From Macrostomum lignano (Eukaryota): a DNA stretch of 64,000 nucleotides. The position numbers were made by a program, and so were the translations under genes. Positions 32,488 to 46,790 of the stretch are shown here, in pieces. The stretch is taken from positions 124,001 through 188,000 of the forward strand of contig NIVC01001832.1 in the NCBI GenBank assembly GCA_002269645.1, written 5' to 3'. Below the pieces are notes generated by a model. It saw only the letters and a list, made by a program, of their open reading frames with translations, was not told the origin of the DNA and did no database searches. Every line of letters starts with the position of its first letter. Positions within the stretch are counted from its first letter, which is position 1.

Positions 32488-35400
32488 ATGGAAACTTTGA
32501 AATCCGCGGCTGCCGCGGCCGCAGCAGCCGCCGCCGGTGGCCCATATTCCCCGGAGCAGCCTGACGGTCCGGACTTCTCGCCACAGAGCGGCGGAGCCGG
32601 CGGCTACCCCGGCGGCCTGTCTGTCGCGGCGGCCTACTCCTCCGCACTCGGCCAGGGATTTCCGGCCGCCGCCAGGTCCGCCGCTCCCTACATCTCGGCT
32701 GCTCACGGCTTCGGTGGCGACCAGGCCGCTGCCGCCGCTTACTTCGCTGCCCACCACGGCTTCGGCGCTGCCAGGCCTGATGGTGAGTCAAGGCCTGATA
32801 CAGCTGCTGCATCCCGCCTTCATCTGTCTGAGCTGCTGCATCCCGCCTTCATCTGTCTGAGCTGCTGCATCCCGCCTTCATCTGTCTGAGCTGCTGCATC
32901 CCGCCTTCATCTGTCTGAGCTGCTGCATCCCGCCTTCATCTGTCTGAGCTGCTGCATCCCGCCTTCATCTGTCTGAGCTGCTGCATCCCGCCTTTATCTG
33001 TCTGAGCTGCTGCATCCCGCCCTCATTTGCCCTGTCTACCCCTCATCTCCCCCTGCCTGTCCCTCATTTCCCCCTGTTTGTCCCTCATCTCCCCCTGCCT
33101 GTCCCTCATCTCCCCCTGCCTGTCCCTCATCTCCCCCTGCCTGTCCCTCATCTCCCCCTGTTTGTCCCTCATCTCCCCCTGCCTGTCCCTCATCTCCCCC
33201 TGCCTGTCCCTCATCTCCCCCTGCCTGTCCCTCATCTCCCCCTGCCTGTCCCTCATCTCCCCCTGTCTGTCCCTCATCTCCCCCTGCCTGTCCCTCATCT
33301 CCCCCTGCCTGTCCCTCATCTCCCCCTGCCTGTCCCTCATCCCCCCTGCCTGTCCCTCATCTCCCACTGCCTGTCCCTCATCTCCCACTGCCTGTCCCTC
33401 ATCTCCCACTGCCTGTCCCTCATCTCCCACTGCCTGTCCCTCATCTCCCCCTGCCTGTCCCTCATCCCCCCTGCCTGTCCCTCATCTCCCACTGCCTGTC
33501 CCTCATCTCCCCCTGCCTGTCCCTCATCTCCCACTGCCTGTCCCTCATCTCCCACTGCCTGTCCTTCATCTCCCACTGCCTGTCTCTCTACTCTCCACCA
33601 ATTGCTTTACTTTTCCTTTTAGTCATCCTCTCCTCCCCTTTCTCAATCACAGCCTGGCTATTTTTACTGACTTTATCAAACAAATTCCTCTGGCTTCATT
33701 CTCTGGCTCCATTCTCACCTTTCCTACCTTTCCAACTCCTCAGCCAACTCAACCAAAGTCCGACTGTGGGAGCAAAGAGTTAGATCCCCACTGGCCTCAG
33801 AGCCCCGCCCCTGCCCGCCTTCTCAATCGGCGACCAACCCCACCAAACGAGATTGCTATCTGTAAGTCCGGCCGAGGCCCCTCGCCGTCTCAAAGATCTC
33901 AAATAAAAATCTATCTATTGTAAGAAGTCGGACCAGATAATATAGACAGACAGGCAGGCAGGACAGTCAAGATTAAAGCGAGTAGAAATTCAGAGTGATT
34001 TCATCGCATCGTGTCGTCTCTTTGGAACAGCCATCTCCCTTCGGGGGGAATCCCATTGTTTTGCCATCGCTGTCTACGACCACCTGTTGCGTGGCCGAAT
34101 TTCCCAACTGACTTATAAATCAGATTACTCCAACTTTCAGGCCACTCCGCCACAGTTCCCACTTGTTCCTGTTTCCCTCATGGTCAGGATAGTCATGTTT
34201 GTTTGTTTTAATTTTTAACGAAAATAACAACAACTCCAACTACTGCCCGCAGACTTGCCGCGCGACTCAGAGGGTGTCAGAGTTGGCGCCGGCCTCGGCA
34301 AAGGCAAGAAGATGCGCAAGCCGCGCACCATCTACTCCAGCCTCCAGCTGCAGCAGCTTAACAGGCGGTTCCAGCGCACCCAGTACCTGTCACTGCCTGA
34401 GCGGGCTGAGCTGGCAGCCAGCCTGGGGCTCACGCAGACTCAGGTGAGTGAATATTCAGTTGTGATTTGATGGGGAAATGGACTGAGATAGGGATAGACA
34501 GGGATAGGCAAGAATAGACATGGGATAGACATGGGATAGACAGGGATAGACAGGGATAGACAGGGATAGACAGGGATAGACAGGGATAGACAGGGATAGA
34601 CAGGGATAGACAGGGATAGACAGGGATAGACAGGGATAGACAGGGATAGACAGGGATAGACAGGGATAGACAGGGATAGACAGGGATAGACAGGGATAGA
34701 CAGGGATAGACAGGGATAGACAGGGATAGACAGGGATAGACAGGGATAGAAAGGGATAGACAGGGATAGACAGGGATAGACAGGGATAGAAAGGGATAGA
34801 CACAACGTTAGCAATGCTAGAGTAGCCTTTAAAAAGCGACATCCCCGCGAAGAGTGAAGAAGCAACAAAAAGGAAAAGAAAACTTCTCCCCTACCGATGC
34901 CAAAAACGCCCCGAGGACTCAAATAGAATTGTTTTGGATTGCGTGACGGCCCGCGAATGTCCTCTCAGCGTTCTGCGGGGCGGGCTCTTCCTCGCCACTC
35001 GTCAGCGCGCATGGTTGGTGGCGTGCGCGCCGTGACGCAACTGTTGCATCCTTGAAGTTGGGAGGAATGCATGGAGAGTTCTAGCCTATTCTCACTCTCT
35101 CCTGAGGGCGCCATTGTGCCACTCTATTCTGCTTTATATCTCTAAAATGCTTTGAGCTATTGTCTTTATAGAGGCCTTTGACTTATCAATAATTTTTCCC
35201 TCTTAACTCAATATTTCAGGTGAAGATTTGGTTTCAGAACAAGCGGTCCAAGTATAAGAAACTGCTGAAGCAGGGCCAGGACCCGCAGAACCTGGTTGAC
35301 AGCATGAACGCCGACGATGAGGAATTTTCTGATGACGTGAGTTCTTTGGGATTTTGATGAAGCAGAGTTTTAGTGGGTAGCAGAGCAGTCCTGAAGGATC

Positions 35401-36513
35401 GGGTGAGGGGTAGCGGAGCAGTCCTGAAGGATCGGGTGAGGGGTAGCGGAGCAGTCCTGAAGGATCGGGTGAGGGGTAGCGGAGCAGTCCTGAAGGATCG
35501 GGTGAGGGGTAGCGGAGCAGTCCTGAAGGATCGGGTGAGGGGTAGCGGAGCAGTCCTGGAGGATCGGGTGAGGGGTAGCGGAGCAGTCCTGAAGGATCGG
35601 GTGAGGGGTAGCGGAGCAGTCCTGAAGGATCGGGTGAGGGGTAGCGGAGCAGTCCTGAAGGATCGGGTGAGGGGTAGCGGAGCAGTCCTGAAGGATCGGG
35701 TGAGGGGTAACGGAGCAGTCCTGAAGGATCGGGTGAGGGGTAACGGAGCAGTCCTGGAGGATCGGGTGAGGGGTAGCGGATTGAATGGGGGCAAGTGAAT
35801 CGTCAGATTTTGGGATAGAAAAGAATTTCAGAATCCTTAATGAGACAGCAGTCTTTTAGTTGAAAAAAAACGGATAAGAGGATTCAAACAAAGTTAAAAA
35901 TTTTAATCTAGATAAAAAAACCGATTCTTTCCAGGAAATGATGATGAAGAACGAAGCGAACAGTCCGATAAAGTCTGAAGCGATCATCCCGATGCACCAG
36001 CTTCCCCAGCATCCCCAGCTTCATCAGCATTTTCAACAGCGCCAGCAACAGCTTGACTCGGCTAACGAAGCCTGCGAAGCTGACTCCTTGGATTCGAACT
36101 CCCGACCTCCGCCTCCGCCGACAACTCACGGATCCTCCGAGGCTGAAGCCGACGCCGCTGGAAGCGGCGACTCGGGAGTTCCGGAAATTCAGAAGCCGCA
36201 GCCGCTGCCTCCGCCGCCACCGGCCCTGCTTGGTGAAGTTGGTGCACCTGGAGGAGGCGCCAGTGGCCCCCTGATATCGCAGTTGCTCCCGCATCAGCAC
36301 GCGCTCCAGCATCAGCACGCACTGCAGCAACATCATCAGCAGCAGCATTCTCAGCTGCATTCGTATAGCGGAGACTGGGAGCAATCGCATCATCTCCATG
36401 GCAACGCCTACCAGCTGCCGATGTCGCCTCATCCAGGCTACAGTTACCACGGAAACCCGTACTGGTACAGCGGCGGCTATCAGCAGCAGGTGTACAACCA
36501 TCAGGAGTGCTGA
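32488..36513 (+). CDS. Dlx: Distal-less/Dlx homeobox gene A, about 393 aa; exons 32488-32782, 34253-34443, 35220-35336, 35935-36513
   Basis: Homeodomain [44 protein letters not shown]|[19 protein letters not shown] with the Dlx-typical intron between TQTQ and VKIWF. Poly-Ala N-terminus, Q/H/P-rich C-terminus; all junctions GT-AG in phase. Confidence 0.93.
32803..33585. repeat. Dlx-A intron 1 arrays: 8 x 29-bp GCTGCTGCATCCCGCCTTCATCTGTCTGA followed by about 21-bp TGCCTGTCCCTCATCTCCCCC array
   Basis: Copies counted by hand. Confidence 0.93.
34488..34802. repeat. 10-bp array AGGGATAGAC (Dlx-A intron 2)
   Basis: Direct tandem copies. Confidence 0.95.
35377..35780. repeat. 33-bp array GTAGCGGAGCAGTCCTGAAGGATCGGGTGAGGG (Dlx-A intron 3)
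   Basis: Direct tandem copies. Confidence 0.95.
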
Positions 36514-45900: not shown

Positions 45901-46790
45901 AGGGCAGATGAGGGACAGACAGGGGGAGATGAGGGACAGACAGGGGGAGATGAGGGACAGACAGGGGGAGATGAGGGACGGACAGGGCAGATGAGGGACA
46001 GGGGGAGATGAGGGACGGACAGGGCAGATGAGGGACGGACAGGGCAGATGAGGGACGGACAGGGCAGATGAGGGACGGACAGGGCAGATGAGGGACGGAC
46101 AGGGCAGATGAGGGACGGACAGGGCAGATGAGGGACGGACAGGGCAGATGAGGGACGGACAGGGCAGATGAGGGACGGACAGGGCAGATGAGGGACAGAC
46201 AGGGGGAGATGAGGGACAGGCAGTGGGAGATGAGGGACAGGCAGTGGGAGATGAGGGACAGGCAGTGGGAGATGAGGGACAGACAGGGCAGATGAAGGCG
46301 GGATGCAGCAGCTCAGACAGATGAAGGCGGGATGCAGCAGCTCAGACAGATGAAGGCGGGATGCAGCAGCTCAGACAGATGAAGGCGGGATGCAGCAGCT
46401 CAGACAGATGAAGGCGGGATGCAGCAGCTCAGACAGATGAAGGCGGGATGCAGCAGCTCAGACAGATGAAGGCGGGATGCAGCAGCTCAGACAGATGAAG
46501 GCGGGATGCAGCAGCTGTATCAGGCCTTGACTCACCATCAGGCCTGGCAGCGCCGAAGCCGTGGTGGGCAGCGAAGTAAGCGGCGGCAGCGGCCTGGTCG
46601 CCACCGAAGCCGTGAGCAGCCGAGATGTAGGAGCGGCGGACCTGGCGGCGGCCGGAAATCCCTGGCCGAGTGCGGAGGAGTAGGCCGCCGCGACAGACAG
46701 GCCGCCGGGGTAGCCGCCGGCTCCGCCGCTCTGTGGCGAGAAGTCCGGACCGTCAGGCTGCTCCGGGGTGAACCTGGCGGCTGTCTGCAT
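39985..46790 (-). CDS. Dlx: Distal-less/Dlx homeobox gene B, about 264 aa if the 1-nt frameshift at about 46630 is corrected; exons 46790-46536, 45703-45528, 42826-42704, 40224-39985
   Basis: Homeodomain [44 protein letters not shown]|[19 protein letters not shown]; same four-exon phase pattern as gene A (1,0,0). The start codon at 46790 is uncertain and an upstream exon is possible. Confidence 0.88.
40260..42660. repeat. 39-bp array ATCAGTAATGTGTGATGTGCGATTTTCACTTTGCCATGT, split by the retrotransposon (40260-40376 and 42135-42660)
   Basis: Direct tandem copies on both sides of the insertion. Confidence 0.93.
40377..42134 (+). mobile_element. 5'-truncated non-LTR retrotransposon with RNase H (I/R1/LOA-group-like), antisense in the last intron of Dlx-B
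   Basis: ORF open from the truncation point to stop 42042: end of RT/thumb ([30 protein letters not shown]), RNase H ([36 protein letters not shown]), C-terminal C-x2-C..H..C knuckle. Flanked by direct repeat AGTAATGTGTGAT (40364-40376 / 42135-42147); short TAAGT-CAAGT tail. Confidence 0.9.
42862..44605. repeat. 35-bp array CTGCCATTATTCAACTCAGCTACATACTGAACAAT (Dlx-B intron 2)
   Basis: Direct tandem copies. Confidence 0.95.
45040..45505. repeat. 20-bp array GAGAGGTCATACACAGCTAA (Dlx-B intron 2)
   Basis: Direct tandem copies. Confidence 0.92.
45900..46517. repeat. Dlx-B intron 1 arrays: inverted counterpart of the Dlx-A intron 1 arrays (8 x 29 bp plus 19-21-bp array)
   Basis: Reverse complement matches 32803-33585 units. 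Confidence 0.93.

Follow-up and report, generated by a model that had tools for sequence, protein, structure and literature searches.

The window analysed here, a 64-kb stretch of the Macrostomum lignano genome, carries two predicted Dlx genes of four exons each, Dlx-A and Dlx-B, arranged tail-to-tail with their stop codons 3.5 kb apart. They are adjacent and convergent (Dlx-A on the plus strand, ending at 36513; Dlx-B on the minus strand, ending at 39985), and no gene lies between them. The structure of Dlx-A was obtained by reading splice sites and translating, that of Dlx-B by translation and by tblastn of the M. lignano UniRef models P0002, P0004 and P0007.

32488-36513, plus strand: Dlx-A gene
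32488-32782, 34253-34443, 35220-35336 and 35935-36513 (including the stop codon), plus strand: Dlx-A coding exons
39985-46790, minus strand: Dlx-B gene
46790-46536, 45703 (or 45709)-45528, 42826-42704 and 40224-39985 (including the stop codon), minus strand: Dlx-B exons
46630-46631, minus strand: 1-nt deletion in Dlx-B, CC against CCC in Dlx-A (Pro67, 32686-32688)
36514-39984: 3.5-kb interval separating the stop codons, made up of 3' UTRs and intergenic DNA
39132-39660: degenerate telomere-like array inside this interval

On translation the Dlx-A reading frame is intact and encodes a protein of 393 aa, whose first 282 residues match database protein P0001 without a difference. Exons 2–4 of Dlx-B are likewise intact; the 1-nt deletion at 46631-46630 shifts the frame between the gene's own ATG (46790) and the remaining coding sequence, so that exon 1 is frameshifted as assembled and its coding use is only putative. 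Three database models of Dlx-B read a leucine, in frame, at the position of Dlx-A Pro67.

Assignment to Dlx and age of the duplication

Several features of their sequences assign both genes to Dlx. The Pfam Homeodomain profile matched Dlx-A with E 5e-21 and Dlx-B with E 6e-22, and in a protein database search the top annotated matches of both were DLX/Distal-less proteins from many phyla. Among PDB entries the best matches were DLX-5 (E 6e-30) and DLX-3, with an engrailed fusion construct (6m3d, E 8e-27) ranking between them and BarH and Msx far behind (~1e-18). In both genes the homeobox intron falls between homeodomain residues 44 and 45 (...TQTQ / VKIWFQN), the typical Dlx position (PMC3199776). 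We also looked for Dlx motifs outside the homeodomain, namely an SKSAF-like motif at the N-terminus, RVNGKGKKM ahead of the homeodomain and tryptophan motifs near the C-terminus. Dlx-A retains (V)RV..GKGKKM, an LKSA start and PYWY close to the C-terminus; Dlx-B has NKKLRRL in place of the pre-homeodomain motif and keeps only tryptophan-containing remnants. Pfam DLL_N matched neither protein.

Both genes have four exons with identical intron phases, and both carry an extra intron after exon 3, which points to an old duplication at the DNA level. They also have in common a DP..L[VI].SM motif after the homeodomain that is absent from the monogenean flatworm Dlx P0084; with only ~40 unconverted alignable residues to go by, this sharing hints at a lineage-specific duplication that would not be orthologous to the vertebrate pairs. 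A protein search with Dlx-B exons 2–4 returned no B-type orthologs, the best matches being made through the homeodomain region.

Shared tracts and divergent remainder

Two inverted tracts, with arms 11–14 kb apart, are shared between the genes. Their coordinates follow, together with those of a second minisatellite and of the exon 3 segments used for comparison.

32549 to ~33035, plus strand: A arm of tract 1; codon 21 onward of exon 1, donor site, 29-bp minisatellite
46768 to ~46283, minus strand: B arm of tract 1; codon 9 onward of exon 1, donor site, 29-bp minisatellite
34313-34449, plus strand: tract 2, A arm; homeodomain residues 1-44 and donor GTGAGT
45522-45658, minus strand: tract 2, B arm; homeodomain residues 1-44 and donor GTGAGT
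33040-33588, plus strand: 21-bp minisatellite, 26 copies, Dlx-A intron 1
45892-46295, minus strand: 20/21-bp minisatellite, 20 copies, Dlx-B intron 1
35220-35336, plus strand: Dlx-A exon 3 (helix 3 and flank), unconverted comparison segment
42704-42826, minus strand: Dlx-B exon 3, unconverted comparison segment

An earlier sequence-only reading of this DNA had described tract 1 as a near-exact reverse complement, and base-by-base alignment bears this out: over the first 473 nt (32549-33021) the arms differ by one substitution (T/C at 32995/46323) and the 1-nt indel only. Beyond 33021 mismatches mount (33022, 33027, 33038, 33039, 33052). As inverted-repeat arms the tract resolves into a first block of 139 nt at 100% identity (32549-32687 / 46630-46768) and a second of 450 nt at 97% (32687-33136 / 46182-46631), offset by one base. 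Within exon 1 there are no synonymous differences at 60.7 synonymous sites, and the donor site and intronic 29-bp minisatellite are 99–100% identical between the genes; TRF counted 7.8 units in A (32802-33026) and 7.9 in B (46289-46516), or 8 copies each. Protein constraint does not explain identity that extends over an intronic donor and a 225-nt minisatellite of equal copy number. The 5' edge of the tract is abrupt (32549/46768), with upstream similarity vestigial at most, and leaves Dlx-B just 8 private N-terminal codons. We rejected the idea that tract 1 is a transposon or generic repeat: it encodes a Dlx N-terminal region (aligning with P0003) and has no further copy in the window.

Tract 2 had likewise been said to differ at only 3 nt, and we count 3 mismatches in 137 nt through the GTGAGT: CTT/CTC, AAC/AGC (Asn/Ser) and CTG/TTG, giving a dS of 0.062 and a dN of 0.011. 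Identity stops 6 nt into the intron, with all six intronic nucleotides matching. This 3' edge coincides almost exactly with the exon end and could also be explained by selection. Exon 3, by comparison, differs at 42 of 114 aligned nt (pS 0.91, saturated; dN 0.29), in line with the earlier remark that nearly every synonymous site there has changed; 3/137 against 42/114 is a highly significant difference (Fisher p 1.3e-13). Synonymous divergence is far from uniform and runs from 0 through 0.06 to saturation along three adjacent coding segments.

Apart from these tracts little can be aligned. With a word size of 11, blastn found no A/B matches beyond the tracts and the adjoining minisatellite; in Smith-Waterman comparisons the flanks, unique introns and 5' parts of exon 2 scored no higher than shuffled sequences, and the last exons are unalignable. 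In the whole window, long-range inverted matches are confined to the Dlx tracts and the terminal repeats of one transposon. The sequence-only reading, which held the N-termini, exon-2 5' parts, other introns and last exons to be unalignable, missed a weaker homology that runs past tract 1 through the second minisatellite (33040-33588 vs 46295-45892, 85–92%), where the A and B arrays have two exact unit types in common and differ in their dominant units. Nor had it mentioned the Dlx-B exon 1 frameshift or the precedent in Capitella teleta described below.

Divergence is graded, at ~0.4% in tract 1, 2.2% in tract 2 and 8–15% in the second minisatellite, the difference between tracts 1 and 2 not being significant (p 0.08). 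GC3 is 0.80 in the shared tracts and 0.65 in the rest of Dlx-A (p 0.004), a weak hint in the direction expected under GC-biased conversion.

Origin of the mosaic

The two genes are a statistically significant mosaic of near-identical and saturated segments, the near-identity reaches into non-coding DNA, and the copies are inverted and closely linked. We consider non-allelic gene conversion between old inverted Dlx duplicates to be the best explanation, with a probability of roughly 0.8. Heterogeneous dS, non-coding identity and unrelated DNA between the tracts all favor the old duplication with localized conversion that had been proposed from the letters. An ancient flatworm Dlx duplication would have left two copies side by side in tail-to-tail, convergent orientation, which then diverged to saturation over most of their length, while two islands would still be exchanging sequence through interlocus conversion. 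The first of these begins in exon 1 and continues into the minisatellites of intron 1; the second is the exon-2 segment for homeodomain residues 1-44. When one copy is broken, it may be repaired off the inverted paralog, on the same or the sister chromatid and without crossing over, overwriting a few hundred bases. The island limits would lie where homology is broken by indels, private minisatellites or differences maintained by selection, and such interruptions would restrict later events to the same islands. We infer the repair mechanism, its direction and its repeated rather than single occurrence; the graded identity suggests several events of different ages. Judged from divergence, "recent" can be bounded only at about 0.4–2%, and continuous concerted evolution of the two islands fits as well as late conversion after long divergence. 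Subgenome divergence in M. lignano is 1.1–2.2% (PMC10733133), and we discarded it as a yardstick for dating, as arrays homogenize internally and polishing may alter the counts.

The 5' half cannot have been duplicated recently as one block, since the intron and exon-2 start between the tracts show no homology. An improbable alternative is a one-off non-homologous transfer, in which a template switch or partial duplication recently pasted in the 5' end, the homeobox identity reflects a separate older event or constraint, and no conversion is ongoing. The sharp 5' edge of tract 1, with little upstream similarity and few private codons left in Dlx-B, would suit such a transfer, but exon 2 of Dlx-B expects a phase-1 junction as in A, indicating that B had a homologous exon 1 earlier. 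Furthermore, divergence is far higher in the 21-bp array, though it is homologous, than in the 29-bp one, a contrast that calls for two or more events ending at different places, and tract 2 forms a separate second island across an unrelated intron.

Could the identity have been introduced by the assembly? Some 85% of the M. lignano genome occurs in triplicate, and 93% of read pairs map to more than one locus (PMC10733133); the two public assemblies were built from the same PacBio data, and the short reads used to polish one of them were multi-mapping (PMC5730564). In Mlig_3_7, which was Pilon-polished, only 64% of bases are scored error-free (PMC5730564). One paralog's sequence might then have been copied onto the other during assembly or polishing of this triplicated, repeat-rich genome, the true loci being less alike or one of them lacking the tract, and the 1-nt indel within tract 1 does fall in a C run. 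We regard this as very improbable. The tracts measure just 0.14–1 kb, have unique sequence on both sides and are much shorter than PacBio reads. Their arms can also be told apart at defined positions and by the array next to them. Polishing may blur small differences but is unable to generate 470 nt of homology. Moreover, the three separately predicted Dlx-B models (P0002, P0004 and P0007) carry the same mosaic as the window, in the order B flanks, shared exon-1 tract, B exon-2 start, shared homeobox, B exon 3, with the B-diagnostic leucine in tract 1 and serine in tract 2, where the A model P0001 has proline and asparagine. This argues against misassembly, although the public assemblies draw on common reads; the sequence-only reading had argued against a simple assembly collapse from small differences within the shared tract. 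The shared reads and multi-mapping polishing do make the precise count of differences within each tract uncertain.

Far more speculatively, since the islands are inverted repeats lying 5' in convergent genes, a crossover inside them in place of a conversion would invert the intervening 11–13 kb and swap promoter and first exon between the Dlx bodies; given three rearranged subgenome copies, a standing inversion polymorphism might re-wire the regulation of both paralogs with conversion as a by-product, a scenario to which we give very little credence. Least credible is purifying selection at the nucleotide level without sequence exchange (an exonic enhancer, splicing element or RNA structure): tract 2 is the most conserved part of the homeobox, ends with the exon and corresponds to the identical exon in Capitella (PMC3199776), but practically no synonymous site is unchanged in helix 3, the protein segment conserved best, base-by-base constraint is hardly to be expected of a minisatellite repeated equally often in both genes, other paired Dlx homeoboxes are not identical in DNA (PMC3199776), and an Rfam scan matched no family.

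Parallels in other paired genes

The same gene-conversion reading has been published for the tail-to-tail pair CtDlxa/CtDlxb of Capitella teleta (McDougall et al. 2011, BMC Evol Biol 11:241; PMC3199776). Both are lophotrochozoan Dlx duplicates, linked tail-to-tail and otherwise divergent. They differ in phylum (Platyhelminthes versus annelid), exon number (four in the M. lignano genes, three in Capitella) and intergenic distance (3.5 kb versus 18.2 kb). In addition, the 3' part of the homeobox is near-identical in Capitella (3 differences) whereas it is synonymously saturated in M. lignano, which also has a second, longer island comprising exon 1 and the intronic minisatellite. The vertebrate Dlx1/2, Dlx3/4 and Dlx5/6 bigene clusters are likewise close, convergently transcribed pairs but lack homeobox nucleotide identity of this kind (PMC3199776). 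Inverted, linked copies are also homogenized non-reciprocally, non-coding sequence included, in the Drosophila Hsp70 pair and Y-chromosome palindromes (cited in PMC3199776); there whole genes or arms are affected, whereas M. lignano has two islands (~0.5–1 kb and 137 nt) in otherwise unalignable genes. Among the Logan-derived Dlx matches inspected none was Macrostomum-like; one ENA metagenome contig (L001) with two tandem 5' homeobox exons is a separate curiosity unrelated to this locus.

As far as literature searches show, this is the first Dlx duplicate pair described from a flatworm, and it would be the second case, after Capitella, of a homogenized 5' homeobox exon in a tail-to-tail invertebrate Dlx pair. 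A flatworm thus joins an annelid and the vertebrates in having the tail-to-tail arrangement, and the same exon appears to be a conversion island in two phyla; this recurrence bears on the repeated origin of Dlx pairs by inverted duplication and on the erasure of orthology signal in homeobox genes by conversion. For work on Macrostomum, the assembly of Dlx-B exon 1 needs correction or confirmation, gene trees that rely on the N-terminus or homeodomain of Dlx will mislead, and any probe or RNAi fragment taken from exon 1 or from the homeobox will target both Dlx genes.

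The Dlx pair and its shared islands

The window carries two Dlx homeobox genes, which are convergent with their stop codons 3.5 kb apart:

Dlx-A, + strand, exons 32488-32782, 34253-34443, 35220-35336 and 35935-36513 (spliced model, translation)
Dlx-B, - strand, exons 46790-46536, 45703 (or 45709)-45528, 42826-42704 and 40224-39985 (translation and UniRef models)

The spliced Dlx-A model encodes a 393-aa protein with an intact reading frame, and in a database protein comparison P0001 was 100% identical to it over the first 282 residues. The P0001 end (...GSGDSGEC) implies an extra intron within exon 4 (window 36177-36504) that removes the Gln/His-rich C-terminus; this reflects either alternative splicing or faulty gene prediction. 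The Dlx-B exons match three M. lignano UniRef proteins (P0002, P0004 and P0007) at 98-100%, and the UniParc number of P0001 falls within their range. Pfam finds a homeodomain in each gene, the top annotated database matches are Dlx/Distal-less, and among solved structures DLX-5 and DLX-3 match best, with BarH and Msx trailing by about ten orders of magnitude. In both genes an intron splits the homeodomain between residues 44 and 45, as is typical of Dlx; a further phase-0 intron follows exon 3 at a common position, and exons 1 and 2 meet in a phase 1 junction. Because these positions and phases are shared, Dlx-A and Dlx-B are, judging from gene structure, DNA-level duplicates of a single four-exon ancestor.

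The sequence-only reading had described the pair as a patchwork of near-identical and deeply diverged segments, and alignment bears this out. In tract 1, 32549 to ~33035 of Dlx-A matches 46768 to ~46283 of Dlx-B, a stretch that spans Dlx-A codons 21-98, the donor site and the 29-bp intronic minisatellite, which is present in both genes as claimed (7.8 and 7.9 copies). The first 473 nt differ at just two sites: one C is missing from B (CCC at 32686-32688 in A, CC at 46631-46630 in B), and there is a T/C at 32995. Mismatches build up from 33022 on. The three differences read by eye in the homeobox exon were also recovered: in tract 2, which covers the 5' part of that exon and the donor GTGAGT (34313-34449 vs 45658-45522), 3/137 nt differ, and identity stops 6 nt into the intron. 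Exon 3, which encodes helix 3 and had been called diverged, differs at 42 of 114 aligned nt. What had been overlooked is that homology goes on past the 29-bp array into a 21/20-bp minisatellite (33040-33588 vs 46295-45892), alignable at 85-92%, in which A and B have two exact unit types in common and differ in their dominant variants. Elsewhere in both genes and their flanks, blastn and local alignment against shuffled controls agreed with the earlier claim that the copies do not align, and over the whole window we found no other long-range inverted match except one pair of transposon terminal repeats.

Probable gene conversion and its alternatives

The M. lignano genome is hard to assemble, and the identity could be an artefact of assembly. 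About 85% of the genome is in three copies, whose overall divergence is ~2.2% and whose coding sequences differ by 1.1% (PMC10733133), and both public assemblies rest on the same PacBio reads, the Pilon-polished one having ~64% of its bases scored error-free (PMC5730564). Common reads, polishing and this error rate make the exact difference count and the indel unreliable. However, each tract is far below long-read length and has unique sequence on both sides, and the tract arms carry private differences, as the earlier argument against a simple collapse had held. Moreover, in three separate Dlx-B models (P0002, P0004 and P0007) the upstream minisatellite, which is B-specific and read as AECSLEV repeats, is joined to the shared exon 1, followed by a B-specific segment, the shared homeobox with a B-specific Ser, and the B-specific exon 3; the Dlx-A model carries Pro and Asn at the diagnostic positions. 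Given these short, uniquely flanked tracts, the private differences and the three concordant models, the A/B mosaic itself appears robust. The diagnostic residues common to all B models suggest that the last exchange there is no younger than the genome triplication.

The one-nucleotide indel in tract 1 also shifts the frame of Dlx-B exon 1, a consequence missed earlier. From the ATG at 46790, which lies directly 5' of a CAG that is a possible splice acceptor, the frame that opens is not the one of the donor site and exon 2; the frame that fits exon 2 lacks a start codon. P0002, P0004 and P0007 are in frame across the indel site, with Leu where Dlx-A has Pro, and the window's gctc-ctac lacks one T when set against gct ctc tac, or one C when set against gct ccc tac. 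Because the B models stay in frame and the window is one base short, the most probable source of the frameshift is an indel made in assembly or a lesion in this one copy. Dlx-B exons 2-4 are intact; in exon 3 a dN of 0.29 together with saturated dS points to past purifying selection.

A single recent copying of one gene's 5' half is ruled out, since the sequence between the tracts (the rest of intron 1 and the start of exon 2) is unrelated in A and B when compared with shuffled controls. Amino-acid constraint is ruled out as the cause of the identity because the identity extends over a splice donor and a tandem array in the intron.

The explanation that remains, on comparison of the two copies, is that old, closely linked, inverted paralogs exchange non-reciprocally in two islands only, tracts 1 and 2. 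Synonymous divergence (Nei-Gojobori) is not uniform across exons: we counted no synonymous difference in the shared exon 1 (60.7 synonymous sites), a dS of 0.062 in the 5' part of the homeobox, and a pS of 0.91, which is saturated, in exon 3 (tract 2 vs exon 3, Fisher p 1.3e-13). This graded synonymous divergence and the identity in non-coding DNA support local gene conversion between old inverted duplicates, as first proposed. Overall divergence is likewise graded (tract 1 ~0.4%, tract 2 2.2%, 21/20-bp array 8-15%), which would fit several events differing in age and end point; the difference between tracts 1 and 2 is not significant (p 0.08). GC3 is 0.80 in the shared tracts vs 0.65 in the rest of Dlx-A (p 0.004), a shift that GC-biased conversion would produce but that is weak evidence for it. 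By the usual mechanism, a break would be repaired from the paralog, in the same chromatid or its sister, by synthesis-dependent strand annealing and without crossing over; the islands would persist because the flanking identity that conversion needs has been lost everywhere else. More speculatively, a crossover might take place within the islands, which form inverted repeats at the 5' ends of both genes; it would flip the DNA between them, so that each gene body received the other's promoter and first exon. We saw no sign of such an inversion: 4/4 database models (P0001, P0002, P0004 and P0007) are collinear with the window.

Age of the duplication and the Capitella precedent

Dlx-A keeps the motif GKGKKM before the homeodomain and a flatworm-type extension that the Dlx protein of the monogenean Cichlidogyrus (P0084) also has; Dlx-B has diverged at both. 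After the homeodomain, DP..L[VI].[SA]M is common to A, B and P0003, an A-like Dlx protein from outside the window with 60% identity to Dlx-A, and is absent from P0084. This distribution, a comparison of ~40 residues rather than a tree, suggests a duplication within the macrostomid lineage, separate from those that gave the annelid and vertebrate pairs. P0003 is probably a third M. lignano Dlx paralog located elsewhere in the genome, since its UniParc number falls in the batch range of M. lignano entries. No B-type ortholog was found in the protein database.

The phenomenon has already been published for another spiralian, which the sequence-only reading had overlooked. The annelid Capitella teleta has two Dlx genes, tail-to-tail, 18.2 kb apart and divergent overall, between which GENECONV called a 150-bp tract; the authors explained it by conversion that depends on the proximity of inverted duplicates, with Drosophila Hsp70 and Y-chromosome palindromes as cited parallels (McDougall et al. 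2011, PMC3199776). The flatworm pair matches it in arrangement and in which exon is converted, but its intergenic distance is much shorter, the 3' part of its homeobox is fully diverged, and a second, longer island covers exon 1 and the intronic minisatellite. In the literature on M. lignano with gene conversion or Dlx, we found no description of the locus; given the Capitella precedent, the flatworm pair therefore adds a new instance to a known phenomenon.

Repeats of the 5' homeobox exon of Dlx were also seen in other taxa. An ENA metagenome contig (L001, 1026-1706) carries two tandem same-strand copies 537 nt apart, which differ at 21/144 nt and have an almost identical core of ~75 nt, and the exon is repeated in a protein model of the ostracod Notodromas monacha (P0121). 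These may be tandem exon duplications or mutually exclusive exons.

Minisatellites, the neighbouring gene and mobile elements

Nearly all introns of the window's spliced genes contain a private minisatellite. From 31441 to 48178 almost every intron and flank of Dlx-A and Dlx-B has its own long array, with units of 10, 19, 20, 21, 29, 33, 35 or 39 bp and up to 49 copies, and only the 29-bp and 21/20-bp arrays are common to both paralogs. Between the convergent genes, at 39132-39660, lies a degenerate telomere-like array of period 18, AACCCTAATCCTAATCCT, with mixed CCCTAA/CCTAAT units (~29 copies, 80% matches) in a single orientation. It lies almost midway between the inverted arms (midpoint for tract 1, 39658).

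Upstream of Dlx-B, on the same strand, is a further gene:

49760-58141, - strand, CaMK-like protein kinase gene, exons 56666-58141 and near 55.7, 50.9 and 50.0 kb

In P0002, P0004 and P0007 this kinase is wrongly fused to Dlx-B, with the 21-bp minisatellite at 47075-48178 translated as the bridge. Intron 3 of Dlx-B contains a 556-aa ORF (40372-42042, + strand) with an RNase H domain (E 2e-14), a retroelement fragment inserted into the intron's 39-bp minisatellite, pieces of which flank it at 40258-40376 and 42135-42661. Finally, 129-nt inverted repeats (51605-51732 and 54446-54574, 97.7% identical) enclose a 686-aa ORF (52006-54066, - strand) that has no Pfam match, and the same minisatellite is found on either side (50972-51521 and 54575-55056); 51605-54574 has the look of a TIR transposon that landed in a minisatellite of a kinase-gene intron.
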